This document shows, one piece after another, positions 8,113 through 62,021 of a stretch of 64,000 nt of DNA. Source of the DNA: Octopus sinensis (taxonomy: Eukaryota); contig NC_043010.1 in NCBI RefSeq assembly GCF_006345805.1, forward strand, positions 59,520,001 to 59,584,000. The letters run 5' to 3'. The notes below the pieces were generated by a model that saw nothing but the letters and a program-made list of their open reading frames with translations, was not told the DNA's origin and did no database searches. The first letter of the stretch is position 1. Each line of letters opens with the position of its first letter. The position numbers and the translations under genes are program-made.

Positions 8113-10512
8113 ATGAACAAATTGTGTTCTCCTTATCCCTGGATACTGTCAAGAACAGAAATGTTATGTCTGTATGTATTACTGACTTTCTTTCACTTTT
8201 CCCTAAGTGAAGATATCACATACCATGTTGAAGAAGAGAATAGTCCCTATACCTATGTAGGGGACATTGCTACTGACTTACAGAAATCAGACAGCTCCTT
8301 AAAGAATAAGGATTTGATTACATTTAGTCAACTGCAACAAAAGGGAGAACAGTTGTTCAATGTGACAAGAACAGGCAAACTGTACACTGTTGAGACATTG
8401 GATGCTGAGTCTGTGTGTCGTTATGAGAAAGAATGTTTTGAAATCGTTAAAGTTGCTGTTCACAAATCCAAGACATTTATGAAGATCTTAAAGATTAAAG
8501 TCATAATAGAAGACATCAATGACCACCAACCTGAGTTTCCAACTGAAGAAGTCAACATTCAGTTTTCTGAAACAGATGGCAAAGGCACGAAAAGATCAAT
8601 ACCCAATGCTGTTGATAAAGATATGGGTTATCAAAATAATTTAATTAAGTATGAATTAAAAGAGGATAATGAACATTTCTCTTTATTAGTTGCCAAACAA
8701 GCTGATGGCATATCATCATTAGAAATTATTTTAGAAGATAAATTAGACAGAGAAAAGAAGGACAATTATGATATTGAGATCATTGCTAAAGATGGGGGAA
8801 CTCCACCAAAACAATCTGTTTTAAATGTGAAAATATCTGTAAAAGACGAAAATGATAACAGACCACAATTTTCTCAAAGTATCTACAATGTCTCTATTGA
8901 ACATAAACATAAAAAGAATATTCCAGTCGTCACATTATCTGCCAGTGATTTAGACATTGGCAGGAATGGTAAAATATCTTTCTATTTTAGTCAGAAAACT
9001 GATGAAACGATAAAAGAATACTTTCATTTAGATGAAAGTACTGGAAAGTTATTTCTTGAAAAACCTATAAATTTTGGTAAGAAAGAATCATTTAAATTAT
9101 ATGTGAAAGCCAAAGATAATGGAATTCCTCCTCTGAGTTCCATTGCAATAATTCAGATAAATGTTATCAACCAACACAACAATCCCCCAAATATTGATGT
9201 GAACTTTATTTCTACACAGAATCACAACACAGCTACCATTCTGGAAGACATCAAAGTTGGTAGTTTCATTGCTTATGTGATGGTCACTGACAATGATGTT
9301 GGACACAATGGACAGGTGAACTGTCATATCAAAGACGACACATTCAAACTACAGTCAATGGGATCGAAGGAATATAAAATAGTTCTAAAGAAAGCAGTAG
9401 ACAGAGAGACACAGGAACATTATCACTTTACTGTGTCGTGTGAAGATAAAGGATTACCTGCTCTGAAAACTGATAAAGATCTGTCAATCCAAGTGTTAGA
9501 TGTGAATGATGTAGAGCCACACTTTACGAAAGACACATTCAAGTTCCTTACCTATGAGAATGACAAAGCTAATTTCCCTATTGGCTTTATCAATGCTACA
9601 GACCCAGATATTGGTAAGGGAGGTGAATTGTCTTATTCTCTGAGAAATAAACAGCAATATCGTCTGCCATTCCAGATTATCAACTCTGGCTTTATTTCAA
9701 CAAACCAGTCTTTAGACAGAGAGCACAGAGATTTCTATGAGTTTGAGGTTTTTTGTGAAAGACAATGGAAGCCCATCTCTGAATAACACAGTGAATGTTG
9801 AAGTGGAAGTATTGGATAGAAATGATAATGCTCCATATTTTACATTTCCTAGTGTTGACCCTTTCACTCTTAATGTCCACTATCATCCGCAAAGTAAGAA
9901 CGACATCACAGTTCTGAAAGCATCTGATATAGACAGTCACATGAATGCTTTTCTCAGGTATGAAATCGTTTCAGGTAACGAGAGACAGTTATTTAAACTG
10001 GATTCGTTCACTGGTGTGTTATCTTACTCTCGCACAGTTTACCAAAATGATGCCGGATCATATGAGCTTGAGTTTGTTGTGAAAGACAGTGGTACTCCAG
10101 TTCTGTCAGCAACAACTAGTGTGTCTTTGACACTGACTGTTAGTAACAAGACGTCACCAATGTTCACAGCTGTGCACCTACCAAGTGATAACACCATAGA
10201 TGCGACATTGTTGATTATCATTGTAGAGCAGCTGTGATAGTATCTATAGCTATTGTGGTTTCTATAACCCTGTGTATTGTGAGATGTAACAATGTGAGAA
10301 ATAGCTCATCTGAAAGAACAGCAGAAGAGAAACAGGCATACCAATGTCGCAATGAGATGAGACAGTTGATCTATCAAGGTAACAACAGTGTACCTGTGAT
10401 GTCAGGTAATCGAGGAGAGATGTCAGAGAGATATGGTCATTCAAGGAGCCATTACTATCCTGAAGACTGGAAGACATCGACAATGAGCAGAAGTTTACCA
10501 AAAAGTATGAAG
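8113..10512 (+). CDS. PCDH: Protocadherin P2 large exon (EC1-EC6, TM); two 1-nt indels (T6 at 9749-9754; missing t near 10227), probably assembly errors
   Basis: ttttgtttcag acceptor, ORFs 8104-9786, 9737-10237 and 10234-10536 join into a full protocadherin; donor AAG|gtatgt 10512/10513. Confidence 0.92.
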
Positions 10513-10748
10513 GTATGTTTTAAGATTTTCTGTTGATAATTCTATAATTATTTACTGAATAATAATAAATGTTATTTATAGTCTTCATCTGTAACTTGTT
10601 AGGTTGTTTCTTTCTTCATATTTATTTTAGTTCAATAACCCAAATGGTGATTTTTATTATAGAATGCACAGATTTTATAAAATTTTTAATGTAATATATT
10701 TTTCAAAATTACAATGAGAGATGAAACAACTTTTTACTCTAACAGCAG

Positions 10749-10899
10749 AAATACAGTCAACCCATTGAGGTGACATCTTATGGAGACAGCAGACCATCTT
10801 CTAACTATCCCACTGACACATTGACCAGTCGTAAGAGTAGTGGACAGTGCTGGAGTGAGCGGTCAAGCAGACAGTATGAAGAAATACCAGCAATGTCAG
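10749..10899 (+). CDS. PCDH: P2 exon 3
   Basis: aacagcag acceptor (alt 10746), 151 nt, G|gt. Confidence 0.9.
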
Positions 10900-11948: not shown

Positions 11949-12070
11949 GAATCTATGGTGGTGCCCCACCGGATGTATCAAGCACCAGTGAGAGAGACCA
12001 TTACCAAGACAGATATGTGAAACCTCCAGAGAGACAGTTACCTTCAACACCAGATGTTGTTGTCAGTTAA
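11949..12070 (+). CDS. PCDH: P2 terminal exon 4
   Basis: tgtttcag acceptor, 122 nt to TAA. Confidence 0.9.
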
Positions 12071-14956: not shown

Positions 14957-17358
14957 ATGAACAAATTGTGTTCTCCTTATCCCTGGATACTGTCAAGAAC
15001 AGAAATGTTATGTCTGTATGTATTACTGACTTTCTTTCACTTTTCCCTAAGTGAAGATATCACATACCATGTTGAAGAAGAGAATAGTCCCTATACCTAT
15101 GTAGGGGACATTGCTACAGACCTACAGAAATCAGACAGCTCCTTCTTAAAGAATAAGGATTTAATTACATTTAGTCAACTACAACAAAAGGGAGAACAGT
15201 TGTTCAATGTGACGAGAACAGGTAAACTGTACACTGTTGAGACATTGGATGCTGAGTCTGTGTGTAGTTATGAGAAAGAATGTTTTGAAATCGTTAAAGT
15301 TGCTGTTCACAAATCCAAGACATTTATGAAGATCTTAAAGATTAAAGTCATAATAGAAGACATCAATGACCACCAACCTGAGTTTCCAACTGAAGAAGTC
15401 AACATTCAGTTTTCAGAGAGAGATAGTAAAGGATCAAAACTATCAATACCCAATGCTGTTGATAAAGATATGGGTAATAAAAATAGTTTAATTAAGTATG
15501 AATTACATGACAACGAAGGGCAATTTTCATTAAGTGTTTCTAAAGAAGCAGATGGAATTTCCACTTTAGAAATTATTTTAGAAGATAAATTAGACAGAGA
15601 AAAGAAGGACAGTTACAATATTGAAGTCATTGCTAAAGATGGAGGAACTCCACCAAAACAATCTGTTTTAAATGTTAAAATATCTGTGGAAGATGAAAAT
15701 GATAATAAACCACAATTTTCTCAAAGTATCTACAATGTTTCTATAGAACATAAACATAAAAAGAATATTCCAGTAGTCACATTATCTGCCAATGACTTAG
15801 ATATTGGCAGGAATGGTAAAATATCTTTCTATTTTAGTCAGAAAACTGATGAAAAAATAAAAGAATACTTTCATTTAGATGAAAGTACTGGGAAGTTATT
15901 TCTTGAAAAGCCTATAAATTTTGGTAAGAAAGAATCATTTAAATTATATGTGAAAGCCAAAGATAATGGAATTCCTCCTCTGAGTTCCATTGCAATAATT
16001 CAGATAAATGTTATCAACCAACACAACAATCCCCCAAATATTGATGTGAACTTTATTTCTACACAGAATCACAACACAGCTACCATTCTGGAAGACATCA
16101 AAGTTGGTAGTTTCATTGCTTATGTGATGGTCACTGACAATGATGTTGGACACAATGGACAGGTGAACTGTCATATCAAAGACAACACATTCAAACTACA
16201 GTCAATGGGATCGAAGGAATATAAAATAGTTCTAAAGAAAGCAGTAGACAGAGAGACACAGGAACATTATCACTTTACTGTGTCGTGTGAAGATAAAGGA
16301 TTACCTGCTCTGAAAACTGATAAAGATCTGTCAATCCAAGTGTTGGATGTGAATGATGTAGAACCACACTTTACGAAAGACACATTCAAGTTCCTTACCT
16401 ATGAGAATGACAAAGCTAATTTCCCTATTGGCTTTATCAATGCTACAGACCCAGATATTGGTAAGGGAGGTGAATTGTCTTATTCTCTGAGAAATAAACA
16501 GCAATATCGTCTGCCATTCCAGATTATCAACTCTGGCTTTATTTCAACAAACCAGTCTTTAGACAGAGAACACAGAGATTTCTATGAGTTTGAGGTTTTG
16601 TGAAAGACAATGGAAGCCCATCTCTGAATAACACAGTGAATGTTGAAGTGGAAGTATTGGATAGAAATGATAATGCTCCATATTTTACATTTCCTAGTGT
16701 TGACCCTTTCACTCTTAATGTCCACTATCATCCGCAAAGTAAGAACGACATCACAGTTCTGAAAGCATCTGATATAGACAGTCACATGAATGCTTTTCTC
16801 AGGTATGAAATCGTTTCAGGTAACGAGAGACAGTTATTTAAACTGGATTCGTTCACTGGTGTGTTATCTTACTCTCGCACAGTTTACCAAAATGATGCCG
16901 GATCATATGAGCTTGAGTTTGTTGTGAAAGACAGTGGTACTCCAGTTCTGTCAGCAACAACTAGTGTGTCTTTGACACTGACTGTTAGTAACAAGACGTC
17001 ACCAATGTTCACAGCTGTGCACCTACCAAGTGATAACACCATAGATGCGACATTGTTGATTATCATTGTAGTAGCAGCTGTGATAGTATCTATAGCTATT
17101 GTGGTTTCTATAACCCTGTGTATTGTGAGATGTAACAATGTGAGAAATAGCTCATCTGAAAGAACAGCAGAAGAGAAACAGGCATACCAATGTCGCAATG
17201 AGATGAGACAGTTGATCTATCAAGGTAACAACAGTGTACCTGTGATGTCAGGTAATCGAGGAGAGATGTCAGAGAGATATGGTCACTCGAGGAGCCATTA
17301 CTATCCTGAAGATTGGAAGACGTCAACAATGAGCAGAAGTCTTCAAAAGTCCACAAAG
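14957..17358 (+). CDS. PCDH: Protocadherin P3 large exon; one 1-nt deletion (T4 at 16596-16599), probably an assembly error
   Basis: ORFs 14948-16603 and 16600-17403; acceptor tttcag 14956; donor AAG|gtaagt 17358/17359. Confidence 0.93.
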
Positions 17359-18227
17359 GTAAGTCTTATTCCAATTATCAATCTTGCAGTATATAGCATT
17401 TAATTAAAAATGATCAAGTTTATTAATTTATATCAGAATCACTGTTCCTTGATGATTGGTAGTATTTAATTTCCAAATGTATTTAATATGAAATATGCCA
17501 TGTTGAAAAATTACTTTTGTGATGTATTGATGAGAAATACATTTTGCCCTGCGCATGTTACAAGTTATTTGATGTTTAATGAATCTCTAGCAATTCTACC
17601 ACAACAAGAATCAAAGATGCTTTCATACGTTGTAGGTTATGAATCTCTTTAATCACAGTCAAAAATGAGTAGACTTAGTAATGAGTTGACATAGATATTG
17701 TTGAAATTGTTTACAGCTATGTGCACTGTCTGAGTGAGAATTCAAGGTATATAGCGTGTGTGCATGTGTAGGTTCAAATAGGGTAATAGGAAACAATTGA
17801 CTGAGAATTGGAAGTTGTCTTGATATTTTTCAGTTTTCTCACTTTATATAAAGTTAAGTTAATCCTTTAATGCCTCTGTTTCAATTCATCTCATGATAAA
17901 TGTATCTGGACGTTAATAGTAGACAATTACGGTTTTGATTCTTTATCGAATATGTACACTTCTTTTAATATGGAGTGATCACTAATTTCACTAGTGTCAT
18001 CATTGAGTTTTTAGTAATTTCTCTCTTGTTTTATCTTGGAACATTGTCATATTTCAAATAAATTACCTTGTATAAGCCTGTGTTACATTTTACTAATTGA
18101 AGTGATAAATGCACAAGCTGCCCTATTTTATCAGACAGAAACTATTTTATTCAATATTAGATATAGGACTGTCAGTCATAAATGTTATCTGTATAATATG
18201 TCTTGTTACTATTGTATTTTACAGCAG

Positions 18228-18378
18228 AAATACAGTCAACCCATTGAGGTGACATCTTATGGAGACAACAGACCATCTTCTCACTATCCCACTGACACAT
18301 TGACCAGTCGTAAGAGCAGTGGACAGTGCTGGAGTGAGCGGTCAAGTAGACAGTATGAAGAAATACCAGCAATGTCAG
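18228..18378 (+). CDS. PCDH: P3 exon 3
   Basis: ttttacagcag acceptor (alt 18225), 151 nt. Confidence 0.9.
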
Positions 18379-18677: not shown

Positions 18678-18799
18678 GAATCTATGGTGGTGCCCCACCC
18701 GATGTATCAAGCACCAGTGAGAGAGACCATTACCAAGACAGATATGTGAAACCTCCAGAGAGACAGTTACCTTCAACACCAGATGTTGTTGTCAGTTAA
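18678..18799 (+). CDS. PCDH: P3 terminal exon 4
   Basis: gtttcag acceptor, 122 nt to TAA. Confidence 0.9.
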
Positions 18800-19869: not shown

Positions 19870-20459
19870 TTATTGTTCAATATTATTTATTCAAATTACG
19901 TGAAATAATGATTTCATATGTAGCCTTCCTGTAATATCAAAATATAATATTCTGATGGTGGCCATATTAGATCTGTGTCAGTTCATATTGAATGTCTTCT
20001 TTTCAGACATGGCTGTTGAATATTTTGATAACAGCTCTAGGAAAAGAAAAACTGTTTAGGAATATAATGTCCATTATTTCAATATACTATATTTTTAATG
20101 TTCCCAGGTTTTCATGTACTTGTTTCCTTATTCTTATCTAGTTTCTTCTAAATGATTGTGTACTGATAAATTGATACAGACATTTTATAGGAATTTCTCT
20201 GAAATATCTCGGTGGCAGACTATTTCCATATGTATGAAATTATAGTAATAATATAATAAAATATATTATAAAACTAACATTTGACTGTGTAGTAACAAGA
20301 AAGAAAAGTATGAATAAAAATTGATATGGATATTGTTGTATGTATTTTTATGTGTTTTATGATGTTTAAGTGTGTGTGTGTGTGTTTGTTTGTCTAAATA
20401 CATTAATTGGTTAATTTCTGTATATCTCGTCTTGTATCATTATTACTTCTTTCATTTAA

Positions 20460-20661
20460 GGCAGGGAACTGGCTGAATCATTAGCATGCCAGATGAAATG
20501 CTTAGTGGCATTTTGGCTGTCTTTACATTCTGAGTTCAATTTCCACCAAGGCCAACATTACCCTTCATCTTAATGGGGTCAGTTATACAAGTGCCACTTG
20601 AACACTGGGGTTGATGTAAATGACTAGCTCCCTATCCCCAAATTTCAGGCCCTGTGCCTAC
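20460..20661 (+). mobile_element. SINE (ggcgagctggcagaat...cctttcatcc...gataaa family)
   Basis: Same family at 28707, 44274, 50888, 57170, 61779 and 62022. Confidence 0.75.
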
Positions 20662-21009
20662 AATAGTAAAGATTATTAGTCCTTACATTTATAAATTTCA
20701 GATTCATCTACCTAGGATTATTTCTAAGCTAATGAACCATACCTGATGTGTGAAACCTAAAAAATTATTGGTATGATATTCATCATAATCGGATATTTTA
20801 AAAAATGTCATCTTAAGCATGTCCTTTATTAATTTAGTGTAGGGTTGTTTTACAAAATTTAAGAAATAGTCACTTGTAAATTTTTGTAAAGTTATACACT
20901 AATTACTTATAGAACTATATTTTTTGAAGGTTAAGACAGGAATATGTCACATCATTAAATATAGTTTTATCAGGAATTAGTGTAGAATGTAACTTCCAAA
21001 AAAATTACA

Positions 21010-22482: not shown

Positions 22483-24885
22483 ATTAATAATGTGAATCTG
22501 CCAAATTCCTGGACATCACGACCAGAGATGCTGTTGTGTCTCTGTATTTTATTGACTTTTTCTCATTGTTATTCAAGTGAAGATATCACATATCATGTTG
22601 AAGAAGAGAATAGTCCCTATACCTATGTAGGGGACATTGCTACTGACCTACAGAAATCAGACAGCTCCTTCTTAAAGAATAAGGATTTAATTACATTTAG
22701 TCAACTACAACAAAAGGGAGAACAGTTGTTCAATGTGACGAGAACAGGTAAACTGTACACTGTTGAGACATTGGATGCTGAGTCTGTGTGTAGTTATGAG
22801 AAAGAATGTTTTGAAATCGTTAAAGTTGCTGTTCACAAATCCAAGACATTTATGAAGATCTTAAAGATTAAAGTCATAATAGAAGACATCAATGACCACC
22901 AACCTGAGTTTCCAACTGAAGAAGTCAACATCCAATTTTCAGAGAGAGATGGTAAAGGATCAAAACTATCAATACCCAATGCTGTTGATAAAGATATGGG
23001 TTATAAAAATAGTTTAATTACATATGAATTAAAAAAGGAAGATCAGTATTTCTCTTTACTAGTTGCCAAACATACTAATGGAATATTAACATTGGGAATT
23101 ATTTTAGAAGAGAAATTAGACAGAGAAAAGAAGGACAGTTACAATATTGAAGTCATTGCTAAAGATGGAGGAACTCCACCAAAAGAATCTGTTTTAAATG
23201 TTAAAATATCTGTAAGAGATGAAAATGATAATACACCTCTCTTTTCGCAAAGTATTTACAATGTCTCTATTGAACATAAACATAAAAAGAATATTCCAGT
23301 CGTCACATTATCTGCCAGTGATTTAGATATTGGCAGGAATGGTAAAATATCATATTACTTTGCCAGGAAAACTGCTGAGAAAATGAAGAGACATTTTAAT
23401 TTAGATGAAAATACTGGGAAATTATATTTAGCTACATCTTCAGAAATTGATAAGGATGAATCTTTAAAATTATACATTGAAGCCAGAGATGATGGCAGTC
23501 CTCCACTGAGCTCCGTAGCAATAATTCAGATAAATGTTATCAATGAACACAACAATCCCCCAAATATTGATGTGAATTTTATTTCTACACAGAATCACAA
23601 CACAGCTACCATTCTGGAAGACATCAAAGTTGGTAGTTTCATTGCTTATGTGATGGTCACTGACAATGATGTTGGACACAATGGACAGGTGAACTGTCAT
23701 ATCAAAGACAACACATTCAAACTACAGTCAATGGGATCGAAGGAATATAAAATAGTTCTAAAGAAAGCAGTAGACAGAGAGACACAGGAACATTATCACT
23801 TTACTGTGTCGTGTGAAGATAAAGGATTACCTGCTCTGAAAACTGATAAAGATCTGTCAATCCAAGTGTTGGATGTGAATGATGTAGAACCACACTTTAC
23901 GAAAGACACATTCAAGTTCCTTACCTATGAGAATGACAAAGCTAATTTCCCTATTGGCTTTATCAATGCTACAGACCCAGATATTGGTAAGGGAGGTGAA
24001 TTGTTTTATTCTCTGAGAAATAAACAGCAATATCGTCTGCCATTCCAGATTATCAACTCTGGCTTTATTTCAACAAACCAGTCTTTAGACAGAGAACACA
24101 GAGATTTCTATGAGTTTGAGGTTTTTGTGAAAGACAATGGAAGCCCATCTCTGAATAACACAGTGAATGTTGAAGTGGAAGTATTGGATAGAAATGATAA
24201 TGCTCCATATTTTACATTTCCTAGTGTTGACCATTTCACTCTTAATGTCCACTATCATCCGCAAAGTAAGAACGACATCACAGTTCTGAAAGCATCTGAT
24301 ATAGACAGTCACATGAATGCTTTTCTCAGGTACGAAATCGTTTCAGGTAACGAGAGACAGTTATTTAAACTGGATTCGTTCACTGGTGTGTTATCTTACT
24401 CTCGCACAGTTTACCAAAATGATGCCGGATCATATGAGCTTGAGTTTGTTGTGAAAGACAGTGGTACTCCAGTTCTGTCAGCAACAACTAGTGTGTCTTT
24501 GACACTGACTGTTAGTAACAAGACGTCACCAATGTTCACAGCTGTGCACCTACCAAGTGATAACACAATAGATGCGACATTGTTGATTATCATTGTAGTA
24601 GCAGCTGTGATAGTATCTATAGCTATTGTGGTTTCTATAACCCTGTGTATTGTGAGATGTAACAATGTGAGAAATAGCTCATCTGAAAGAACAGCAGAAG
24701 AGAAACAGGCATACCAATGTCGCAATGAGATGAGACAGTTGATCTATCAAGGTAACAACAGTGTACCTGTGATGTCAGGTAATCGAGGAGAGATGTCAGA
24801 CAGATACGGTCATTCGAGGAGCCATTACTATCCTGAAGACTGGAAGACATCGACAATGAGCAGATCACTTCAGAAGTCTACAAAG
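22483..24885 (+). CDS. PCDH: Protocadherin P4 large exon, intact (EC1 22579-22911, EC2 22912-23244, EC3 23245-23568, then EC4-EC6, TM)
   Basis: 817-aa ORF 22492-24945; acceptor ttttacag 22482; signal ATG 22528; EC1 Cys-X5-Cys (CSYEKEC); donor AAG|gtaagc 24885/24886; exon length 2403 (multiple of 3). Confidence 0.97.
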
Positions 24886-26552
24886 GTAAGCCTTATTTGG
24901 ATTGAGTGTTTGTTAGTAGTTAATGTTCAATTAAGAAGTATTTGAATAGAAGACATCGACAGTGAACTGAAGTTTGCCAAAAAGCATGAAAATATGTATT
25001 AATCTTCTATTTCGGTATTCTCTTAAATCTCCTCTGGATAACAACTTCATTTATACTTTTAGTGTAATCTTTATATTTTCATAAATATAGTTTTAGATAT
25101 TATTTCCATAATTATTATCCAACAATGTCTGTATAACATTATCAATTGTGTATTTCATCTGTTTTGTTTGGTTTTGAAGTATTCAGTGTTCTTCAACGTA
25201 TGTCTTAAAGAAACTTTCCATGGATGAAATCCTGTGACTTGTAACTCTTCAAACAAAACACATATATTAAGTTTGTGACATCAATTATGTTTATAGTATT
25301 AGAGCTGCTTCTAATTCAGAATTTAGTTTCAGTTTATTTTGTACTCTTTTAGAATTATGAGTTAAGAGTAGAAATTGTTATTTCTGGTATGTTATGTTGC
25401 TCATCTACACCAGTCTGCGATATTTTATTATTGTTTGACTGTAACGACATTCAATATTTAAATAAATCATTACACTGGCATATAAATATACAAGTTTTTT
25501 TTTTCTGTTGCATAAGGGTTTGGTCCAGATGTAGGGCCTGTGTCCTTGACCCTCACAATTGAGGTTAATGTAGCTTATTCTCTTGAATAATTAATTACTA
25601 GTATAAAACAGCTGGAGAAGTATGGGAATAGAGTGAATTTCAGTGGGGAAGATGTTCTGAGGCAGAAAGATTAAGTGGTTGTTGTAGGGTACAGAAAGGC
25701 TGGCAATACGATTGACTAGAGGAGAAGAGATGAGTAAGCTGAGTCGCCCAGGGTGGGACCTCTGAGAGTCGAGGCTTCTGTAAGTGAAGGTAGAAAAGCA
25801 GAGTCAAAGTGATATGGTCCATCAATATATGGAGATGCAACATAACTGGAAGAATGAACATATAGATTGTGGCTATCCTGTCCTTTTTCTAAAAATAATG
25901 GATCTAAGACCACTACTTCTTGTAAGGAAACAAAGAATATTTTGTGAGTGTTTTAGGTTGAATAGAAGCTTCTTGAGTTGTGTTTGTGTGAAGTTTTTAT
26001 CAAAATCCTCGAATCTAATGATCTCACATGCCTTGACCTATAAAGCTGAAATGTTATCACTGCTACTTCACACACAAACATCCTTGATTTTTAATTAATG
26101 TTAAATAGTTAATATTTCATGAGGTATCCTCCTTTCTTGGCAATAATTTATCATTATGGCACTTATTTCTTCTCGTCAATAGATGTGTAGTTATAATTAT
26201 CTAAAATCTCTGAGCTACCTTCTGCATCTTAGTGTTGACTTGAAAAATTTTCAAACAATGTTTCTTTTAGTGATCAGTGAAGACTCACTAAGCAATGCAC
26301 TAACCTCTGCGTCTGAGATGTTCCTTCTCATTTCTTCTTCTCTTACCACTGCCATGGACTCTTTCTATGAATAGCTTGCTGAAAATGAAAACTCATTCCA
26401 GTCTCAAAACTTTTACTGTGGTCTCCTCTCCCATATCTCACACTAACCTTTTTCCCTAACCTTTACACCCCAAAACAGTAAGCATCCAGAATTCCCAAAT
26501 GTTTTTCTTGGACAAATCAAGTCATTGTTGTTTTTGTTTTCTTTAACAGCAG

Positions 26553-26703
26553 AAATACAGTCAACCCATTGAGGTGACATCTTATGGAGACAACAGACCA
26601 TCTTCTCACTATCCCACTGACACACTGGCCAGTCGTAAGAGCAGTGGACAGTGCTGGAGTGAGCGGTCAAGCAGACAGTATGAAGAAATACCAGCAATGT
26701 CAG
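26553..26703 (+). CDS. PCDH: P4 exon 3
   Basis: tttaacagcag acceptor (alt 26550), 151 nt. Confidence 0.9.
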
Positions 26704-27042
26704 GTAAAACAATTTCATTTATCCATCTTAATTGGTGTGTTTATCATTTATCCCATTGATATATCCGGGAGTGAAGTCTAAACAAACACTAGGATTTTGA
26801 GGACTTCCAAAATGTTATTTCTAATAGTTTTATCACTATGAATTAAATTTATAGATTAAAAGTGTAAATCTCTTTTTATTTATTAGTTAATTGTCACGTA
26901 ATATGCTCAACATTGTATAGGTCTAATCGTATAGTGAGGTATTAATCCCTTTATAATAGTTATTTTGTAGAGCATTTAATATGAAAGAAGGAAAAGTTGA
27001 CTAAAGTCAATCGTTGAATACCCATTGATATATATGTTTCAG

Positions 27043-27164
27043 GAATCTATGGTGGTGCCCCACCCGATGTATCAAGCACCAGTGAGAGAGACCATTATCA
27101 AGACAGATATGTGAAACCTCCAGAGAGACAGTTACCTTCAACACCAGATGTTGTTGTCAGTTAA
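27043..27164 (+). CDS. PCDH: P4 terminal exon 4
   Basis: gtttcag acceptor, 122 nt to TAA. Confidence 0.9.
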
Positions 27165-27587
27165 GTGAGACTGAGAAAGGAACACAACAGAAATAATATC
27201 ACCTTCAACATTCACACAACATTTAAAACAACAGAAATATTTTAGTTAGTAAATAATATTGGCAACATATGACTGAATATCTTTGTATGTGTTTCAGACA
27301 AAGTATTTGAAATGTGTACATCTGGGGCAGGTTTCTGCAGATAAAAACTGATATAACATCAATTGTTCTGATTAATCAATTCACAACACTCTATTGTTAG
27401 GTAAACGAAAGGAGGTAAATGCAATATTGGAAGAAATCACTGATATATATTCCTCCCAGTGAAGTAAAGTTTGACATTAAAAAATGTTTTCAAGCAATAA
27501 ATATCAACAACTTTATGATGTAAAATGCCTCCATTACATTTTAAATATAAATATAGTTTACATGGCAGCCTTAAATTTGCTAAAAAG

Positions 27588-28116: not shown

Positions 28117-28706
28117 TTATTGTTCAATATTATTTATTCAAATTACGTGAAATAATGATTTCATATGTAGCCTTCTTGTAATATGAAAATATAATATTCT
28201 GATGGTGGCCATATTAGATCTGTGTCAGTTCATATTGAATGTCTTCTTTTCAGACATGGCTGTTGAATATTTTGATAACAGCTCTAGGAAAAGAAAAACT
28301 GTTTAGGAATATAATGTCCATTATTTCAATATACTATATTTTTAATGTTCCCAGGTTTTCATGTACTTGTTTCCTTATTCTTATCTAGTTTCTTCTAAAT
28401 GATTGTGTACTGATAAATTGATACAGACGCTTTATAGGAATTTCTCTGAAATATCTCGGTGGCAGACTATTTCCATATGTATGAAATTATAGTAATAATA
28501 TAATAAAATATATTATAAAACTAACATTTGACTGTGTAGTAACAAGAAAGAAAAGTATGAATAAAAATTGATATGGATATTGTTGTATGTATTTTTATGT
28601 GTTTTATGATGTTTAAGTGTGTGTGTGTGTGTTTGTTTGTCTAAATACATTAATTGGTTAATTTCTGTATATCTCGTCTTGTATCATTATTACTTCTTTC
28701 ATTTAA

Positions 28707-28909
28707 GGCAGGGAACTGGCTGAATCATTAGCATGCCAGATGAAATGCTTAGTGGCATTTTGGCTGTCTTTACATTCTGAGTTCAATTTCCACCAAGGCC
28801 AACATTACCCTTCATCTTAATGGGGTCAGTTATACAAGTGCCACTTGAACACTGGGGTTGATGTAAATGACTAGCTCCCTATCCCCAAATTTCAGGCCCT
28901 GTGCCTACA
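28707..28909 (+). mobile_element. SINE, duplicated copy of 20460-20661
   Basis: Near-identical at an offset of ~8.25 kb. Confidence 0.75.
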
Positions 28910-30842
28910 ATAGTAAAGATTATTAGTCCTTCCATTTATAAATTTCAAATTCATCTACCTAGGATTCTTTCTAGGCTAATGAACCACACCTGATGTGTGA
29001 AACCTAAAAAATTATTGGTATGATATTCATCATAATCGGATATTTTAAAAAATGTCATCTCAAGCATGTCCTCTATCAATTTAGTGTAGAGTTGTTTTAC
29101 AAAATTTTTAAAAAATAGTCACTTGTAATTTTTTGTGAAGTTATATTATACACTAATTACTTATAGAACCATATTTGTTGATCTGACATCGTTTAAAAGA
29201 TATTAGTATACAACACATAATGTTACATCCATGAAAAAGCATTGTCAGACAGAGGCATCAATGTCATGTAGCATTGGGGCATGGAACAGGTAAAGGTTAA
29301 GACAGGAATATGTCACATCAATAAATATAGTTTTACCAAGCTTTAGTGTAGAATGTAACTTCCAAAAAAATTACAAGTGGTTGGTGTTAGAAAGGGCATC
29401 CATCTGTAAAAATCCTGCCTAAACAGTCACAGAAGTCTGGTGCAGGCTCTTGTGGTACCATCCCACCCGTGCTAGCATGGAAGATGGACGTTATAAACGA
29501 TGATGAGGATGATGATATCATCCTTGCCATTACTATGTTATTGCAATATAACTGGAACTGAATGATAGATATTGTAATATAAAAAGGCCATATTGATTGA
29601 TTATGATTCAATTTGATGGTTGAAAAGTGAATATTTGTTTGGTTTCCATAACTTCATTTCACTAAATGACTTTTCTAAATTTGTCATTTAAATAGCTTCT
29701 AGTTTATATCTTCTCTTTTCTGGAATATCTGCTTCTTAATATTATCATAGTGTTTTGTGAATGATGACCAGATGTCCATCTTTGGTGCCATTATAATCGT
29801 CAGACAAATTGTATGTGGTTTGAATTTATATTTTGTTTTTCATCTCTTCTGTTCTAGCAGAATTGTTGTAACCACATATTCCTGCCTTAAACTTTACCCT
29901 TTCCATGTCTGACAGTGGTTTCCTGAATACTACATTATTTGTAGTATACTAATATTTTTTAAACAATGTCACATCAACAAATATAGTTTTATCAGTAATT
30001 AATGTATAATTTAACAACAAAATAACATTGAATTTATTGCACACATGCACAAATACACTCTTGCCCACTTATGTATTCTACTGTGTTCTTGTGAATTACG
30101 TCGAGTTATTTGCAGAACGGCGTTACCGATAATTATTTTACATATATTTACATTTTCATTCGGGGACCAAAGAAATAAGAGAAACTCAATGCAAAATAAT
30201 TTCGTTTGCTGGTGGTAATCCTGTTCAAGGGAGCGAACTCAATTTAGGCTGTATAACTGAAGGAAACATTATTTTCCTATTAGGCTATAAACAAAACGTT
30301 TAATTATTTTGTCATATTTTATAATTTTTCGTGAAGTCTGTAATGTCTATGTTCAAGTGTCAGCACCTTGTATAATTTTTTTTTAATCAGTTAATTATTT
30401 TGAGAGTATGGGAATATGGTGGTTATTATCTTTATGAAGTTTGGCAAATTGGAGCAGTTTTATAATGAATGTAACTTTGAACAATATTCTATAAGATTAA
30501 TTACAAATTAATTATTAGAATAAGAAACTGGGCTGTTTAAGTAGTCACAAGTTATATGCCTTATGAGAAGAACCTGTTAAATCATATGAATTAATTGTCC
30601 AAAATATTGCCTTCTCATTATTATTGCAAAGACAATTCCAGATAAGTAAAGATCTTCAACTTGCCGTAAAATATATGGCAGACAATATATTTAGTGAGCA
30701 GTAAGTTCCCCCTGGGATACTTTACTTCAGTCCTACTTTTGGTGTATTCTTATAAGAAGGAGATTATTTATTCATTACTAAAATAGTCTTTCACAAATTT
30801 TTTTTATTTCTTCCCACTACAAGCTATCTATTTATTTTACAG

Positions 30843-33245
30843 ATTAATAATGTGAATCTACCAAATTCCTGGACATCACGACCAGAGATGCTGTTGTGTC
30901 TCTGTATTTTATTGACATTTTCTCATTGTTATTCAAGTGAAGATATCACTTACCACGTTGAAGAAGAGAATAGTCCCTATACCTATATAGGGGACATTGC
31001 TACTGACTTACAGAAAGCAGACAGCTCCTTCTTAAAGAATAAGGATTTGATTACATTTAGTCAACTGCAACAAAAGGGAGAACAGTTGTTCAATGTGACG
31101 AGAACAGGTAAACTGTACACTGTTGAGACATTGGATGCTGAGTCTGTGTGTAGTTATGAGAAAGAATGTTTTGAAATCGTTAAAGTTGCTGTTCACAAAT
31201 CCAAGACATTTATGAAGATCTTAAAGATTAAAGTCATAATAGAAGACATCAATGACCACCAGCCTGAATTTCCAACTGAAGAAGTCAATATTCAATTTTC
31301 TGAAACAGATGGCAAAGGCACGAAGAGATCAATACAAAATGCTGTTGATAAAGATATGGGTTATAAAAATAGTTTAATTAAGTATGAATTAAAAAAGGAA
31401 AATCAGTATTTCTCTTTACTAGTTGCAAAACATACTAATGGAATATCAAGATTGGGAATTATTTTAGAAGATAAATTAGACAGAGAAACAAAAGACAGCT
31501 ACAATATTGAAGTCATTGCTAAAGATGGGGGAACTCCACCAAAACAATCTATTTTAAATGTTAAAATATCTGTGGAAGATGAAAATGATAACACACCTCT
31601 CTTTTCGCAAACTATCTACAATGTCTCTATAGAACATAAACATAAAAAGAATATTCCAGTAGTCACATTATCTGCCAGTGATTTAGATATTGGCAGGAAT
31701 GGTAAAATATCATATTACTTTGCCAGGAAAACTGCTGAGAAAATGAAGAGACATTTTAATTTAGATGAAAATACTGGGAAATTATATTTAGCTACATCTT
31801 CAGAAATTGATAAGGATGAGTCTTTAAAATTATACATTGAAGCCAGTGATGATGGCAGTCCTCCGCTGAGCTCTGTAGCAATAATTCAGATAAATGTCAT
31901 CAATGAACACAACAATCCCCCAAATATTGATGTGAATTTTATTTCTACACAGAATCACAACACAGCCACCATTCTGGAAGACATCAAAGTTGGTAGTTTC
32001 ATTGCTTATGTGATGGTCACTGATGATGATGTTGGACACAATGGAGAGGTGAACTGTCATATCAAAGACGACACATTCAAACTACAGTCAATGGGATCGA
32101 AGGAATATAAAATAGTTCTAAAGAAAGCAGTAGACAGAGAGACACAGGAACATTATCACTTTACTGTGTCGTGTGAAGATAAAGGATTACCTGCTCTGAA
32201 AACTGATAAAGATCTGTCAATCCAAGTGTTGGATGTGAATGATGTAGAACCACACTTTACGAAAGACACATTCAAGTTCCTTACCTATGAGAATGACAAA
32301 GCTAATTTCCCTATTGGCTTTATCAATGCTACAGACCCAGATATTGGTAAGGGAGGTGAATTGTCTTATTCTCTGAGAAATAAACAGCAATATCGTCTGC
32401 CATTCCAGATTATCAACTCTGGCTTTATTTCAACAAACCAGTCTTTAGACAGAGAACACAGAGATTTCTATGAGTTTGAGGTTTTTGTGAAAGACAATGG
32501 AAGCCCATCTCTGAATAACACAGTGAATGTTGAAGTGGAAGTATTGGATAGAAATGATAATGCTCCATATTTTACATTTCCTAGTGTTGACCCTTTCACT
32601 CTTAATGTCCACTATCATCCGCAAAGTAAGAACGACATCACAGTTCTGAAAGCATCTGATATAGACAGTCACATGAATGCTTTTCTCAGGTATGAAATCG
32701 TTTCAGGTAACGAGAGACAGTTATTTAAACTGGATTCGTTCACTGGTGTGTTATCTTACTCTCGCACAGTTTACCAAAATGATGCCGGATCATATGAGCT
32801 TGAGTTTGTTGTGAAAGACAGTGGTACTCCAGTTCTGTCAGCAACAACTAGTGTGTCTTTGACACTGACTGTTAGTAACAAGACGTCACCAATGTTCACA
32901 GCTGTGCACCTACCAAGTGATAACACAATAGATGCGACATTGTTGATTATCATTGTAGTAGCAGCTGTGATAGTATCTATAGCTATTGTGGTTTCTATAA
33001 CCCTGTGTATTGTGAGATGTAACAATGTGAGAAATAGCTCATCTGAAAGAACAGCAGAAGAGAAACAGGCATACCAATGTCGCAATGAGATGAGACAGTT
33101 GATCTATCAAGGTAACAACAGTGTACCTGTGATGTCAGGTAATCGAGGAGAGATGTCAGACAGATATGGTCATTCGAGAAGCCATTACTATCCTGAAGAC
33201 TGGAAGACGTCAACAATGAGTCGGACACTTCAGAAGTCTACAAAG
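30843..33245 (+). CDS. PCDH: Protocadherin P5 large exon, intact
   Basis: 817-aa ORF 30852-33305; acceptor 30842; ATG 30888; donor 33245/33246. Confidence 0.97.
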
Positions 33246-34914
33246 GTAAGCTTTATTTGGATTGAGTGTTTGTTAGTAGTTAATGTTCAATTAAGAACTA
33301 TATAAATAAAAGACACCGACAGTGAACTGAAGTTTGCCAAAAAGCATGAAAATATGTATTAATCTTCTATTTCGGTATTCTCTTGAATCTCCTCTGGATA
33401 ACAACTTCATTTATACTTTTAGTGTAATCTTTATATTTTCATAAATATAGTTTTAGATATTATTTCCATAATTATTATCCAACAATGTCTGTATAACATT
33501 ATCAATTGTGTATTTCATCTGTTTTGTTTGGTTTTGAAGTATTCAGTGTTCTTCAACGTATGTCTTAAAGAAACTTTCCATGGATGAAATCCTGTGACTT
33601 GTAACTCTTCAAACAAAACACATTTATTAAGTTTGTGACATCAATTATGTTTATAGTATTAGAGCTGCTTCTAATTCAGAATTTAGTTTTAGTTTATTTT
33701 GTACTCTTTTAGAATTATGTGTTTAGTGTAGAAATTGTTATTTCTGGTATGTTATGTTGCTCATCTACACCAAATGTCTGTGATATTTTATTATTATTTG
33801 ACTGTAACGACATTCAATATTTATATAAATCATTACACTGGCATATAAATATACAAGTTTTTTTTTCTGTTGCATAAGGGTTTTTACCAGATGTAGGGAC
33901 TTACTCCTTGACCATCACAATTGAGGTTAATGTAGCTTATTCTCTTGAATAATTAATTACTAGTATAAAACAGCTGGAGAAGTATGGGAATAGAGTGAAT
34001 TTCAGTGGGGAAGATGTTCTGAGGCAGAAAGATTAAGTGGTTGTTGTAGGGTACAGAAAGGCTGGCAATACGATTGACTAGAGGAGAAGAGATGAGTAAG
34101 CTGAGTCGCCCAGGGTGGGACCTCTGAGAGTCGAGGCTTCTGTAAGTGAAGGTAGAAAAGCAGAGTCAAAGTGATATGGTTCATCAATATATGGAGATGC
34201 AACGTAACTGGAAACGTGAATTTATAGATTGTGGCTATCCTGTCCTTTTTCTAAAAATAATGGATCTAAGACCACTACTTCTTGTAAGGAAACAAAGAAT
34301 ATTTTGTGAGTGTTTTAGGTTGAATAGAAGCTTCTTGAGTTGTGTTTGTGTGAAGTTTTTATCAAAATCCTCGAATCTAATGATCTCACATGCCTTGACC
34401 TATAAAGCTGAAATGTTATCACTGCTACTTCACACACAAACATCCTTGATTTTTAATTAATGTTAAATAGTTAATATTTCATGAGGTATCCTCCTTTCTT
34501 GGCAATAATTTATCATTATGGCACTTATTTCTTCTCGTCAATAGATGTGTAGTTATAATTATCTAAAATCTCTGAGCTACCTTCTGCATCTTAGTGTTGA
34601 CTTGAAAAATTTTCAAACAATGTTTCTTTTAGTGATCAGTGAAGACTCACTAAGCAATGCACTAACCTCTGCGTCTGAGATGTTCCTTCTCATTTCTTCT
34701 TCTCTTACCACTGCCATGGACTCTTTCTATGAATAGCTTGCTGAAAATGAAAACTCATTCCAGTCTCAAAACTTTTACTGTGGTCTCCTCTCCCATATCT
34801 CACACTAACCTTTTTCCCTAACCTTTACACCCCAAAACAGTAAGCATCCAGAATTCCCAAATGTTTTTCTTGGACAAATCAAGTCATTGTTGTTTTTGTT
34901 TTCTTTAACAGCAG

Positions 34915-35065
34915 AAATACAGTCAACCCATTGAGGTGACATCTTATGGAGACAACAGACCATCTTCTCACTATCCCACTGACACACTGGCCAGTCGTAA
35001 GAGCAGTGGACAGTGCTGGAGTGAGCGGTCAAGCAGACAGTATGAAGAAATACCAGCAATGTCAG
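34915..35065 (+). CDS. PCDH: P5 exon 3
   Basis: aacagcag acceptor (alt 34912), 151 nt. Confidence 0.9.
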
Positions 35066-35404: not shown

Positions 35405-35526
35405 GAATCTATGGTGGTGCCCCACCCGATGTATCAAGCAGCAGTGAGAGAGACCATTACCAAGACAGATATGTGAAACCTCCAGAGAGACAGTTACCTT
35501 CAACACCAGATGTTGTTGTCAGTTAA
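35405..35526 (+). CDS. PCDH: P5 terminal exon 4
   Basis: tttcag acceptor, 122 nt to TAA. Confidence 0.9.
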
Positions 35527-39271: not shown

Positions 39272-41629
39272 ATGTTGCTATTTCTCTGTGTTTTACTGAC
39301 TTTCTTCCACTGTTATCTAAGTGAAGATATCACATACCATGTTGAAGAAGAGAATAGTCCCTACACCTATGTAGGGGACATTGCTACTGACTTACAGAAA
39401 TCAGACAGCTCCTTCTTAAAGAATAAGGATTTAATTACATTTAGTCAACTGCAACAAAAGGGAGAACAGTTGTTCAATGTGACGAGAACAGGTAAACTGT
39501 ACACTGTTGAGACATTGGATGCTGAGTCTGTGTGTAGTTATGAGAAAGAATGTTTTGAAATCGTTAAAGTTGCTGTTCACAAATCCAAGACATTTATGAA
39601 GATCTTAAAGATTAAAGTCATAATAGAAGACATCAATGACCACCAACCTGAGTTTACTCAGAAAGAAATTACTCTACATTTTAGGGAAGGAGATGGTAAA
39701 GGTATGAAGAAACCCATACCTAATGCTATTGACAAAGATATGAGTCCAGAAAACAACTTAATTACTTATGAATTAAAAAAAGATAATGGACATTTTTCTT
39801 TATCAGTTTCTAAACAAACTGATGAAATATCAACGTTAAGAATTATTTTAGAAGAGAAATTAGACAGAGAAAAGAAGGACAATTATGATATTGAAGTCAT
39901 TGCTAAAGATGGAGGAAACCCACCAAAACAATCTGTTTTAAATGTGAAAATATCTGTGGAAGATGAAAATGATAATGCACCACAATTTTCTCAAAGTATC
40001 TACAATGTCTCTATTGAACATAAACATAAAAAGAATATTCCAGTAGTCACATTATTAGCCAATGATTTAGATATTGGCAGGAATGGTAAAATATCATATT
40101 ACTTTGCCAGGAAAACTACTGAGAAAGTGAAGAGACATTTTAATTTAGATGAAAATACTGGGAAATTATATTTAGCTACATCTTCAGAAATTGATAAAGA
40201 AGAGTCTTTTAAAATATACATTGAAGCCAGAGATGATGGCACACCTCCTCTGAGTTCCATAGCAACGGTTATAGTAAATGTCATCAACCAACACAACAAT
40301 CCCCCAAATATTGATGTGAATTTTATTTCTACACAGAATCACAACACAGCTACCATTCTGGAAGACATCAAAGTTGGTAGTTTCATTGCTTATGTGATGG
40401 TCACTGACAACGATGTTGGACACAATGGACAGGTGAACTGTCATATCAAAGACGACACATTCAAACTACAGTCAATGGGATCGAAGGAATATAAAATAGT
40501 TCTAAAGAAAGCAGTAGACAGAGAGACACAGGAACATTATCACTTTACTGTGTCGTGTGAAGATAAAGGATTACCTGCTCTGAAAACTGATAAAGATCTG
40601 TCAATCCAAGTGTTGGATGTGAATGATGTAGAACCACACTTTACGAAAGACACATTCAAGTTCCTTACCTATGAGAATGACAAAGCTAATTTCCCTATTG
40701 GCTTTATCAATGCTACAGACCCAGATATTGGTAAGGGAGGTGAATTGTCTTATTCTCTGAGAAATAAACAGCAATATCGTCTGCCATTCCAGATTATCAA
40801 CTCTGGCTTTATTTCAACAAACCAGTCTTTAGACAGAGAACACAGAGATTTCTATGAGTTTGAGGTTTTTGTGAAAGACAATGGAAGCCCATCTCTGAAT
40901 AACACAGTGAATGTTGAAGTGGAAGTATTGGATAGAAATGATAATGCTCCATATTTTACATTTCCTAGTGTTGACCCTTTCACTCTTAATGTCCACTATC
41001 ATCCGCAAAGTAAGAACGACATCACAGTTCTGAAAGCATCTGATATAGACAGTCACATGAATGCTTTTCTCAGGTATGAAATCGTTTCAGGTAACGAGAG
41101 ACAGTTATTTAAACTGGATTCGTTCACTGGTGTGTTATCTTACTCTCGCACAGTTTACCAAAATGATGCTGGATCATATGAGCTTGAGTTTGTTGTGAAA
41201 GACAGTGGTACTCCAGTTCTGTCAGCAACAACTAGTGTGTCTTTGACACTGACTGTTAGTAACAAGACGTCACCAATGTTCACAGCTGTGCACCTACCAA
41301 GTGATAACACAATAGATGCGACATTGTTGATTATCATTGTAGTAGCAGCTGTGATAGTATCTATAGCTATTGTGGTTTCTATAACCCTGTGTATTGTGAG
41401 ATGTAACAATGTGAGAAATAGCTCATCTGAAAGAACAGCAGAAGAGAAACAGGCATACCAATGCCGCAATGAGATGAGACAGTTGATCTATCAAGGTAAC
41501 AACAGTGTACCTGTGATGTCAGGTAATCGAGGAGAGATGTCAGACAGATATGGTCATTCGAGGAGCCATTACTATCCTGAAGACTGGAAGACAGCAACGA
41601 TGAACAGAACACTTCAGAAGTCTACAAAG
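39272..41629 (+). CDS. PCDH: Protocadherin P6 large exon coding part, intact (exon acceptor at 39215/39216)
   Basis: 830-aa ORF 39164-41656; signal ATG 39272 (MLLFLCVLLTFFHCYLSEDITY); 2358 nt to donor AAG|gtaagc, same as P4, P5 and P8. Confidence 0.97.
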
Positions 41630-42269
41630 GTAAGCCTTATTTTGATTGACTATTAGATGGCACCATGTTTACATGAAAGTTACTTTCCTCTTTGGAAATT
41701 TAAGAATACTGTTTGCTGTCCAAATGCTTTTGGTTTAGATTAGCTCTGAAGAATTTACTGATATGGTGCAGAGATGACAAATGCCTTCTGTTTCTTGTTC
41801 AAATCCAAGAGAATCCCTATTAGGAGTATCAAGGGTTCATTCATACACTGTAGAGCATCAGTGACTTAATTAACCATTGTACGTTCTTACCATTTGTCAA
41901 TAGAATCTTTGCTAATTTTATGAAGACTATTGATATAGCAGTTCAGATGCCTCCAGGCTTGTATGGCAATTATACAGACACATGCACAATATGAATTTGT
42001 AGTATAACTAATAAAGGAAGATGTAAAAATTCCATGGACACTATTTGCTTTTTCAGAGTGAGCTATAAAATAATGATTTGTGATGTGTCTAATTTTAGTT
42101 AACTTGTTCTAGTTAGGTGCTCATATGGGCAGTTAGGAAGAATAGCTTGTTAATAGTATATTATTACATACATGTACCCATCAATATTTAAGAATTAGCT
42201 ATGTAACAGGTTCACATTTATAAATGATACCATTACAATATATTTTGTTGCTATTGTATTTTCCAGCAG

Positions 42270-42420
42270 AAATACAGTCAACCAATAGAGGTGACATCTT
42301 ATGGAGACAACAGACCATCTTCTCACTATCCCACTGACACACTGGCCAGTCGTAAGAGCAGTGGACAGTGCTGGAGTGAGCGGTCAAGTAGACAGTATGA
42401 AGAAATACCAGCAATGTCAG
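42270..42420 (+). CDS. PCDH: P6 exon 3
   Basis: ttccagcag acceptor (alt 42267), 151 nt. Confidence 0.9.
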
Positions 42421-51097: not shown

Positions 51098-51157
51098 TGC
51101 TATGTGAAATAATGACATTAAAATGTTTGTTCGTAATTCAGTTATGATGTTCTGATA

Positions 51158-61990: not shown

Positions 61991-62021
61991 TTACTTCTAT
62001 TAATATTTCCTTATTAGTTAA

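Follow-up and report, generated by a model that had tools for sequence, protein, structure and literature searches.

A conserved YEEIP motif in the cytoplasmic tails of octopod protocadherins: a candidate phosphotyrosine docking site

The protocadherin array and its tail exons

The stretch analysed here, a 64-kb window of the Octopus sinensis genome (NC_043010.1, positions 59,520,001 to 59,584,000; coordinates below are positions within the window), carries eight tandem protocadherin repeat units, all on the + strand, with one gene per unit and a spacing of 6.8-12.5 kb. The cytoplasmic tails encoded by these genes contain a short tyrosine motif, YEEIP, and a proline motif, RQLPSTP, which an initial annotation of the window had proposed to be paired docking sites for the SH2 and SH3 domains of Src-family kinases. 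Here we describe the two motifs, their conservation in other octopod protocadherins and the readings that may account for them.

The coding sequence of copy 4 (22528-24885, 26550-26703 and 27043-27164) gives a model of 877 residues with the features of a protocadherin: a signal peptide is followed by six cadherin repeats and one transmembrane segment, and the tail has no catenin-binding domain. Pfam recognises six Cadherin stretches (E 5e-70) and Cadherin_2 in this protein, whereas its cytoplasmic tail matches none of the Pfam families at E<=1, those for vertebrate cadherin tails among them. This tail is 171 residues long, the last 91 of which are encoded by two small exons, and the exon junctions (STK/QKY and AMS/GIY) are the same in the database gene models P0001 and P0004. 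Three coding exons are seen per gene, the penultimate and the last being the tail exons; the earlier numbering of these as exons 3 and 4 would need an untranslated 5' exon to hold. In the database copy 4 is closest to proteins of O. sinensis, with identities of up to 95%, and of O. vulgaris, O. bimaculoides and Argonauta hians; no record identical to the copy 4 or copy 6 model was found. In the homogenised last exon and UTR the window (SSTSERD, ...VRLRKE) is nearer to O. sinensis than to one O. bimaculoides stretch, which has SSTIERD. Additional copies with the same tail lie outside the window in arrays of O. bimaculoides and O. sinensis and also in Argonauta. The features of the array that concern the tail are as follows.

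22528-24885, + strand: copy 4, large first coding exon, encoding the signal peptide, six cadherin repeats, the transmembrane segment and the first ~80 cytoplasmic residues (open reading frame, translation and Pfam; GT donor after AAG at 24885)
26550-26703, + strand: copy 4, penultimate coding exon, 51 codons plus 1 nt, ending in SGQCWSERSSRQYEEIPAMS, with QYEEIP at 26676-26693 (junction as in P0001 and P0004)
27043-27164, + strand: copy 4, last coding exon, encoding GIYGGAPPDVSSTSERDHYQDRYVKPPERQLPSTPDVVVS and the stop, with YVKP (a YxxP motif) at 27108-27119 and RQLPSTP at 27126-27146
27165-27300, + strand: copy 4, proximal tract of the 3' untranslated region (3'UTR), as invariant among copies as the coding sequence and not conserved in Argonauta; a gene-conversion tract
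3865-4018, + strand: copy 1, penultimate exon, YEEI at 3994-4005
5065-5186, + strand: copy 1, last exon, RQLPSTP at 5148-5168
10746-10899, + strand: copy 2, penultimate exon, YEEI at 10875-10886
11949-12070, + strand: copy 2, last exon, RQLPSTP at 12032-12052
18225-18378, + strand: copy 3, penultimate exon, YEEI at 18354-18365
18678-18799, + strand: copy 3, last exon, RQLPSTP at 18761-18781
34912-35065, + strand: copy 5, penultimate exon, YEEI at 35041-35052
35405-35526, + strand: copy 5, last exon, RQLPSTP at 35488-35508
42267-42420, + strand: copy 6, penultimate exon, YEEI at 42396-42407
43659-43780, + strand: copy 6, last exon, RQLPSTP at 43742-43762, ending in DVVAS
54423-54576, + strand: copy 7, penultimate exon, YEEI at 54552-54563
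55140-55261, + strand: copy 7, last exon, RQLPSTP at 55223-55243, ending in DVVAS
61510-61663, + strand: copy 8, penultimate exon, YEEI at 61639-61650, with the Ile codon ATT instead of ATA

The last exon of copy 8 was not found in the remaining 2337 nt up to the window end. A six-frame scan of the window located YEEI eight times (starting at 26679 in copy 4 and at the positions listed for the other copies), all on the + strand and each within SGQCWSERSSRQYEEIPAMS followed by a GT donor. In copy 4 QYEEIP is encoded by CAGTATGAAGAAATACCA; the original description, that it closes the penultimate coding exon of each of the eight copies, is borne out by the sequence and the scan. The same scan located RQLPSTP seven times, and the longer string PPERQLPSTP, which begins at 27117 in copy 4, is likewise present in each of the seven last exons that lie inside the window. 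The spacing between the motifs had been put at about 35 residues; measured in the copy 4 model from the motif tyrosine to the arginine of RQLPSTP it is 36. All eight copies match the Src-family SH2 ligand pattern (a tyrosine with acidic residues at +1 and +2 and Ile/Leu at +3) and all seven visible last exons match the class I SH3 consensus ([RK]xxPxxP, with the Src-type form RxLPxxP).

The intron before the YEEI exon is only ~210-235 nt long in copies 1 and 2. The acceptor of the penultimate exon is a tandem CAG/CAG (NAGNAG) at 26547-26552 and at the homologous acceptors, and database proteins of O. sinensis and Argonauta occur with and without the corresponding Q (877 versus 876 residues, KSTKQKYSQP versus KSTKKYSQP), which fits such an acceptor.

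Conservation of YEEIP across octopod protocadherins

Conservation outside the window was assessed in the best 120 octopod protocadherin cluster representatives (O. bimaculoides, O. sinensis, O. vulgaris and Argonauta hians), which are 50-95% identical overall. Y[DE]E[IL]P stands at the end of the homologous exon in 81 of these, Y-E-E/T-I/L without the proline in nine, and an acidic-acidic-L-P core without the tyrosine in three (CEELP, KEELP and FDDLP). The motif is absent from the other 27; most of these are short isoforms, members of an 'ERRPPSVLLLP' subfamily whose coding sequence stops with the large exon, or members of a clade that has YQTSEYSNY. Across the representatives the pattern extends to [QHP]-Y-E-E-I-P-[AG]-[MVL]. 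When 50 non-redundant tails were compared, the YEEIP columns carried 2.9-3.4 bits of information against at most 1.9 bits in the flanks, and elsewhere in the tail only three single residues reached this level. Tyrosine and proline are the best-conserved residues of the block (83% each), with E at +1, E at +2, I at +3 and P at +4 each conserved in 69-83% of tails. The stronger conservation of E-E-I at +1 to +3 than of its flanks is consistent with the original identification of YEEI as a Src-type SH2 ligand motif.

Comparison between genera points in the same direction. When copy 4 was compared with three Argonauta genes, synonymous differences per site (pS) were ~0.2 in cadherin repeats EC5-6, the transmembrane region and the tail exons, a value that probably reflects true species divergence. 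Non-synonymous differences per site (pN) were 0 in the two 20-codon blocks SGQCWSERSSRQYEEIPAMS and HYQDRYVKPPERQLPSTPDV, and the linker between the blocks varies. On this evidence YEEIP is a real, selected short linear motif of a predicted disordered tail, kept in most octopod protocadherins, because it forms a family-wide peak of positional conservation and lies in a block with a pN of 0 at a pS of ~0.2 from Argonauta. A search of proteins with a profile built from near-identical sequences matched nothing beyond octopod relatives, and the lack of squid matches in it carries no information. Database searches with the tail alone gave only a handful of short proteins and passed over full-length ones that share this tail, apparently favouring proteins of similar length.

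Some paralogs may carry the motif tail only as an option. Four related models (P0016, P0017, P0021 and P0022, a paralog of the O. vulgaris protein P0006) include annotated or assembled isoforms in which the YEEL exon is skipped, either because the protein stops with the large exon or because another 3' exon (...CST*) is used.

Homogenisation of the array and the motifs of the last exon

Within the window the copies differ very unevenly along their length. Among them pS and pN are 0.20 and 0.03 in EC1, 0.32 and 0.10 in EC2-3 and 0.11 and 0.04 in the EC4 region, and fall to 0.023 and 0.002 in EC5-6; the penultimate exon gives 0.12 and 0.013 (pN/pS ~0.1) and the last exon 0.028 and 0.008. The likeness of EC5-6 set against the divergence of EC2-3 is the pattern of gene conversion known from the clustered protocadherins of vertebrates. 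At the DNA level EC5-EC6 (exon-1 codons ~500-680) is 99-100% identical in seven copies, for example at 9751-10050, 16596-16895, 24123-24422, 32483-32782, 40867-41166, 53320-53619 and 60130-60429. The invariance does not stop at the coding sequence: 115-150 nt of 3'UTR past the stop are equally invariant within the array, whereas this tract is diverged in Argonauta, both from Octopus and among the Argonauta copies. The last exon and the proximal UTR have thus been homogenised within the species, because the pS of the exon is so low and the UTR is as invariant as coding sequence in the array yet not in Argonauta; this agrees with the gene conversion already put forward for cephalopod protocadherins (PMC9068888).

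It follows from the youth and homogeneity of the array that the seven copies of RQLPSTP amount effectively to one observation. More generally, since the copies are not independent, invariance within the window is weak evidence for function. The tail had been called invariant, and both motifs do recur in every visible copy; 5 of the 91 residues vary, so that the tail is nearly rather than fully invariant, and its uniformity owes most to recent duplication and gene conversion. The penultimate exon offers better evidence than the last: the introns on both sides of it cannot be aligned between most copies and the exon is retained among them, its pN/pS is ~0.1, and in copy 8 the Ile codon of YEEI carries a synonymous change (ATA>ATT).

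Outside the window the proline motif behaves differently from YEEIP. RQLPSTP is kept in the window's own subfamily in both Octopus and Argonauta, in a block that is invariant between the two, and close variants exist (RQLPTTP, RQLPATP, RKLPSPP and KQLPITP). It is confined to that subfamily, and of the two motifs only YEEIP is conserved in other octopod protocadherin subfamilies. In the nearest paralogs, P0054 and P0057, the prolines are gone (RQLSLTP and KQLSLTQ) and the flank is still recognisable (YQDRFLKPLERQLSLTP and YQERDLKPHDKQLSLTQ); loss of a motif with its flanks kept had been named beforehand as a result that would count against the docking model, and for RQLPSTP this is what is found. 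In most of the subfamilies with YEEIP the last exon is devoid of RxLPxxP, so that conservation of the one motif does not go with conservation of the other.

The last exon does have a core of wider distribution. YVKP, at 27108-27119 and at homologous positions in the other six last exons, places a YxxP tyrosine just upstream of RQLPSTP that had been overlooked in the initial annotation. Tyrosine motifs of the YxxP type are bound by SH2 domains of the Crk/Nck/Abl type. Most other subfamilies stop soon after this point (DTYLQPT*, DSYMKPFL* and ETYLEPV*), and comparison of these ends indicates that D-x-Y-[VLM]-x-P is the family-wide core of the last exon and older than RQLPSTP. Class I SH3 motifs occur in other subfamilies nevertheless. 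A long-tailed subfamily has Y-A-K-P-L-P-A-L-P-K at the site equivalent to RQLPSTP, and in several subfamilies the large exon ends in RRLPPVP or RKLPPVP, a perfect class I consensus. SH3 binding may then be a recurring theme in the family, with SH3 and SH2 pairing not a family property. At the corresponding end of the large exon in the window (24850-24885, ...TSTMSRSLQKSTK) a Q replaces the proline, giving RSLQKSTK where other octopod subfamilies have R-x-L-P. A long-tailed octopod subfamily (P0105, P0125, P0132, P0137 and P0141-P0143) has a strongly conserved C-terminal module, NDVIDLKS.R...WNLP.RNSFTSYAKPLPA.PK, in which there is no strict match to the WIRS motif.

The model of paired SH3 and SH2 docking is thus partly supported by the sequences compared. 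That every isoform could engage a kinase through both domains does not agree with them: most YEEIP subfamilies are without the SH3 motif, about a quarter of the representatives are without YEEIP, and in one paralog there are annotated isoforms that leave out the exon with the motif.

Several further features of the array may be mentioned here. The large exons of four copies contain apparent frameshifting indels: 17 in copy 1 (1316-3381), two in copy 2 (9749 and 10227), one in copy 3 (16596) and one in copy 7 (52665). Pseudogenes with intact tails were considered and rejected for these copies, as nearly all of the frameshifts are of 1 nt, many fall in short base runs and the reference frame is without stops; uncorrected errors of long-read assembly are the more likely explanation. 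In an annotated O. sinensis isoform (P0024, 889 residues; locus L005, 10001-24688) the large exon of one gene is spliced to the tail exons of its downstream neighbour, and a 2561-residue read-through model spans that locus. This may represent either vertebrate-like splicing to downstream tails or an artefact, and near-identical tail exons make such models ambiguous. A short element of ~75-81% identity is scattered in both orientations through the introns and intergenic spacers of the array (61772-62158 and near 20457-20678, 28704-28925, 44263-44408, 50947-51098 and 57164-57320). At 61772-62158 it forms an inverted pair, which suggests a repeat resembling a miniature inverted-repeat transposable element.

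Candidate readers of the motif and comparison with known systems

AlphaFold2, run on the tail with a 30-sequence alignment, returned a mean pLDDT of 55 and a pTM of 0.17. Apart from a juxtamembrane helix, at tail residues 17-36, no structural element is predicted, and YEEIP itself is without secondary structure; there are modest bumps in confidence at the YEEIP block and at the YVKPPERQLPSTP block. The tail is accordingly modelled as disordered, and bumps of this sort are typical of linear motifs that fold on binding. YEEIP lies C-terminal to the transmembrane segment, and E-E-I after a tyrosine is the textbook optimum for SH2 domains of the Src family. In the literature pYEEI(P) peptides serve routinely as standard ligands of Src-family SH2 domains and as activators of these kinases. 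We therefore place first, while holding it tentatively, the reading that YEEIP is a candidate phosphotyrosine docking site for a Src-type SH2 domain, with the SH3 and YxxP motifs as auxiliaries. Src-family kinases are general in animals. In a mollusc, Aplysia neurons express the Src1 and Src2 kinases and Src2 is active in growth cones (PMC6727743).

A mechanism of the following kind can be envisaged. The tail acts as a 'constant region', its copies being kept similar both by purifying selection on the protein across species and by gene conversion on the DNA within the array. Its functional core would be [QHP]-Y-E-E-I-P-[AG]-[MVL], in the stretch of disordered tail with which the penultimate exon closes. 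Upon homophilic engagement or clustering the motif tyrosine would become phosphorylated, with pY-E-E-I then bringing in a protein with an SH2 domain, for which a Src-family kinase is the likeliest candidate. In this way many different ectodomains could be coupled to one tyrosine-kinase output. In the window's subfamily D-R-Y-V-K-P and E-R-Q-L-P-S-T-P might strengthen or prolong engagement of the kinase, as an addition of that subfamily and no family-wide requirement. The phosphorylation, the identity of the reader, the bipartite engagement and the downstream output are the parts of this scheme that we infer.

A number of observations weigh against docking of a Src-type SH2 domain. The residue at -1 is Q, H or P, which is not the preference of the Src kinase domain, and another kinase may have to write the mark. 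Conservation of P at +4, A/G at +5 and a hydrophobic residue at +6 exceeds the known needs of the Src SH2 domain and may point to another reader. The CEELP, KEELP and FDDLP representatives keep the acidic-acidic-L-P core without a tyrosine to phosphorylate, and one clade and several short isoforms have no motif at all. The restriction of RQLPSTP to one subfamily, and the order of the motifs in the tail, discussed below, also count on this side. Finally, any disordered tail of 170 residues would match many motif patterns by chance.

The last of these points has very different force for the two motifs. That they are chance matches carried along by a young, homogenised array is very unlikely as an account of the whole; for YEEIP the likelihood is negligible and for RQLPSTP it is substantial. 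By a rough estimate from residue frequencies, an RxxPxxP match is expected in ~5% of tails of such composition (about one tail in 20), and the same rough estimate gives ~1e-4 for YEEIP in one tail. The low synonymous divergence of the last exon, its adjoining homogenised 3'UTR and the loss of the prolines in P0054 and P0057 all favour chance for RQLPSTP, whereas the invariance of its block between Octopus and Argonauta, the persistence of its variants and the presence of class I motifs in other subfamilies at the same or a different position (KPLPALP and RRLPPVP) speak for function. For YEEIP chance can be rejected on the family-wide positional conservation and the pN of 0 across species, and the question becomes one of what reads it. 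An unphosphorylated YEEI could serve as a sorting signal of the YxxPhi type (Phi being hydrophobic), with binding of the AP-2 mu2 subunit (or of AP-1 or AP-3) setting endocytosis and surface level, and phosphorylation would in that case only switch sorting off. The motif resembles such signals in having Y at 0 and I/L at +3 in a cytoplasmic tail; taken as a regular expression, YxxPhi has no match in the 171 residues other than this Y-x-x-I. No positions of the motif are better kept than the tyrosine and the hydrophobic +3, and the signal would still be present in the variants YDEI, YEEL and YETL. In vertebrates, endolysosomal trafficking via the cytoplasmic domains is a major means of regulating clustered protocadherins, which we count in favour of sorting. 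However, a YxxPhi signal leaves +1, +2 and +4 free, yet in octopods E, E and P are strongly constrained at these positions (72-83% conserved), and acidic residues at +1 and +2 are not a mu2 preference. It is because of this constraint that a Src-type SH2 domain is preferred to a plain YxxPhi signal, which we regard as rather unlikely; the two functions are compatible and not mutually exclusive.

The third possibility is that Y-E-E-I-P-[AG]-[MVL] is read by a module of another kind: a phosphotyrosine-independent pocket of the Atg8/LC3 type that binds LC3-interacting region (LIR) motifs ([WFY]xx[LIV] in acidic or Ser-rich surroundings), a lineage-specific adaptor, or another SH2 domain (Fes/Fer, Syk/Shark, Tec or Shc). 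The conservation from +4 through +6, past the footprint of the Src SH2 domain, would be explained in this way. So would the survival of acidic-acidic-L-P without the tyrosine in P0125, the F for Y of FDDLP in P0124, which a LIR pocket could tolerate, and the invariance between Octopus and Argonauta of entire 20-residue blocks around both motifs, which is beyond what a four-residue docking site needs. Against it, the tyrosine is top-conserved together with the proline, E-E-I is the textbook optimum already mentioned, and patterns of the LIR type are very degenerate; we consider such a reader fairly improbable. Readings of the tail as ITAM, ITIM, Grb2 (YxN), PI3K (YxxM), WIRS, PP1 or PTB (NPxY) motifs were ruled out on the sequence.

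For docking of a Src-type SH2 domain the closest counterpart is the phosphopeptide derived from hamster polyomavirus middle T, a standard Src/Lck/Fyn SH2 ligand, which has the same Y-E-E-I-P core and, as in the window, Q at -1. The octopod motif differs in that its conservation runs on to +4 through +6, and its partner could be an SH2 domain of similar specificity or none. A combination of R-x-L-P-S-x-P with a Src-type tyrosine motif, tens of residues apart on one disordered segment, recalls FAK, where the Src SH3 site ERALPSIPK is close to Y397, and p130Cas, whose Src-binding domain contains RPLPSPP with a phosphotyrosine nearby; the likeness of ERQLPSTP to ERALPSIP is especially close. The order is reversed, since in the octopus the tyrosine stands 36 residues N-terminal to the PxxP, in contrast to FAK, where the SH3 ligand (363-375) precedes Y397, and to p130Cas. 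Furthermore, FAK and p130Cas are cytoplasmic scaffolds, whereas the octopus protein is a transmembrane adhesion receptor whose two motifs are not co-conserved across its family.

The arrangement of the array is also like that of the vertebrate clustered Pcdh alpha and gamma genes, in which a common cytoplasmic tail is placed on diversified ectodomains: in the octopus the copies differ most in EC2-3 and have been homogenised near the membrane. In vertebrates, though, the tail comes from shared constant exons, whereas every octopus gene has tail exons of its own, alike through conversion and selection (PMC9068888). An association of CNR/Pcdh-alpha with Fyn has been reported (Kohmura 1998, as cited in PMC6339937), and convergence with this system had been proposed for the window. 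We find no basis for it in the sequence: the octopus tail shows no Pfam match and none of the vertebrate CM1-3 motifs (CM1-3 as given in PMC6339937), and the copy 4 tail contains no phenylalanine, which makes both the WIRS motif (Phi-x-[TS]-F-x-x) and the PP1 motif [RK][VI]xF impossible.

One observation raises the possibility that the motif tyrosine is itself subject to recoding. The O. vulgaris protein P0006 (QBA31128.1), which comes from a transcriptome-based study (PMC6339937) and represents a paralog outside the window, reads GQCEELPGM, where the corresponding proteins derived from the genomes of O. vulgaris/O. sinensis, O. bimaculoides and Argonauta have GQYEELPGM. In a comparison with P0015/P0018/P0019, it differs from the genome-derived O. 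vulgaris/O. sinensis protein at one of 852 residues, and that difference, Y843C, is the motif tyrosine. A change from Tyr to Cys always requires A>G, which is the change that A-to-I editing produces. Such editing has been reported as enriched in the protocadherins of cephalopods, and Y843C, a single observation, may represent A-to-I RNA editing of the docking tyrosine or else a polymorphism or an assembly error. The homologous Tyr codon in the window is at 26679-26681; there the predicted fold of the YEEI exon and the first 97 nt of the intron after it is no more stable than that of shuffled sequences (z = 0.18), giving no local support for a duplex of the editing type in this paralog. The fullest form of the idea, that most octopod protocadherins share a YEEIP phosphotyrosine switch which recruits a Src-type kinase, is kept by concerted evolution and not by shared exons, and can be erased by A-to-I editing of the Tyr codon, is distinctly unlikely to hold as a whole. 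If real, Y>C editing would be a post-transcriptional off-switch for the YEEIP site.

Motifs of the YEEIP type are well known, and their presence in octopod protocadherins is unreported in the literature searched, where no paper combining YEEI with protocadherin was found. A published list of octopus-specific protocadherin motifs has entries for EC1, EC5, EC6, the transmembrane region and PP1 only, and the same article reports earlier work as finding no analogy with vertebrate intracellular motifs in octopus protocadherins (PMC6339937). The supplements of Albertin 2022 contain nothing on protocadherin tails. For the intracellular signalling of cephalopod protocadherins YEEIP, common to most of a family of more than 100 genes, offers a concrete and cheap experimental handle. 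It also suggests that in the octopus expansion the 'variable outside, constant inside' logic of vertebrates arose anew along another genetic path, and if the tyrosine is also edited, the motif would link two hallmarks of cephalopods, the expansion of the protocadherins and recoding.

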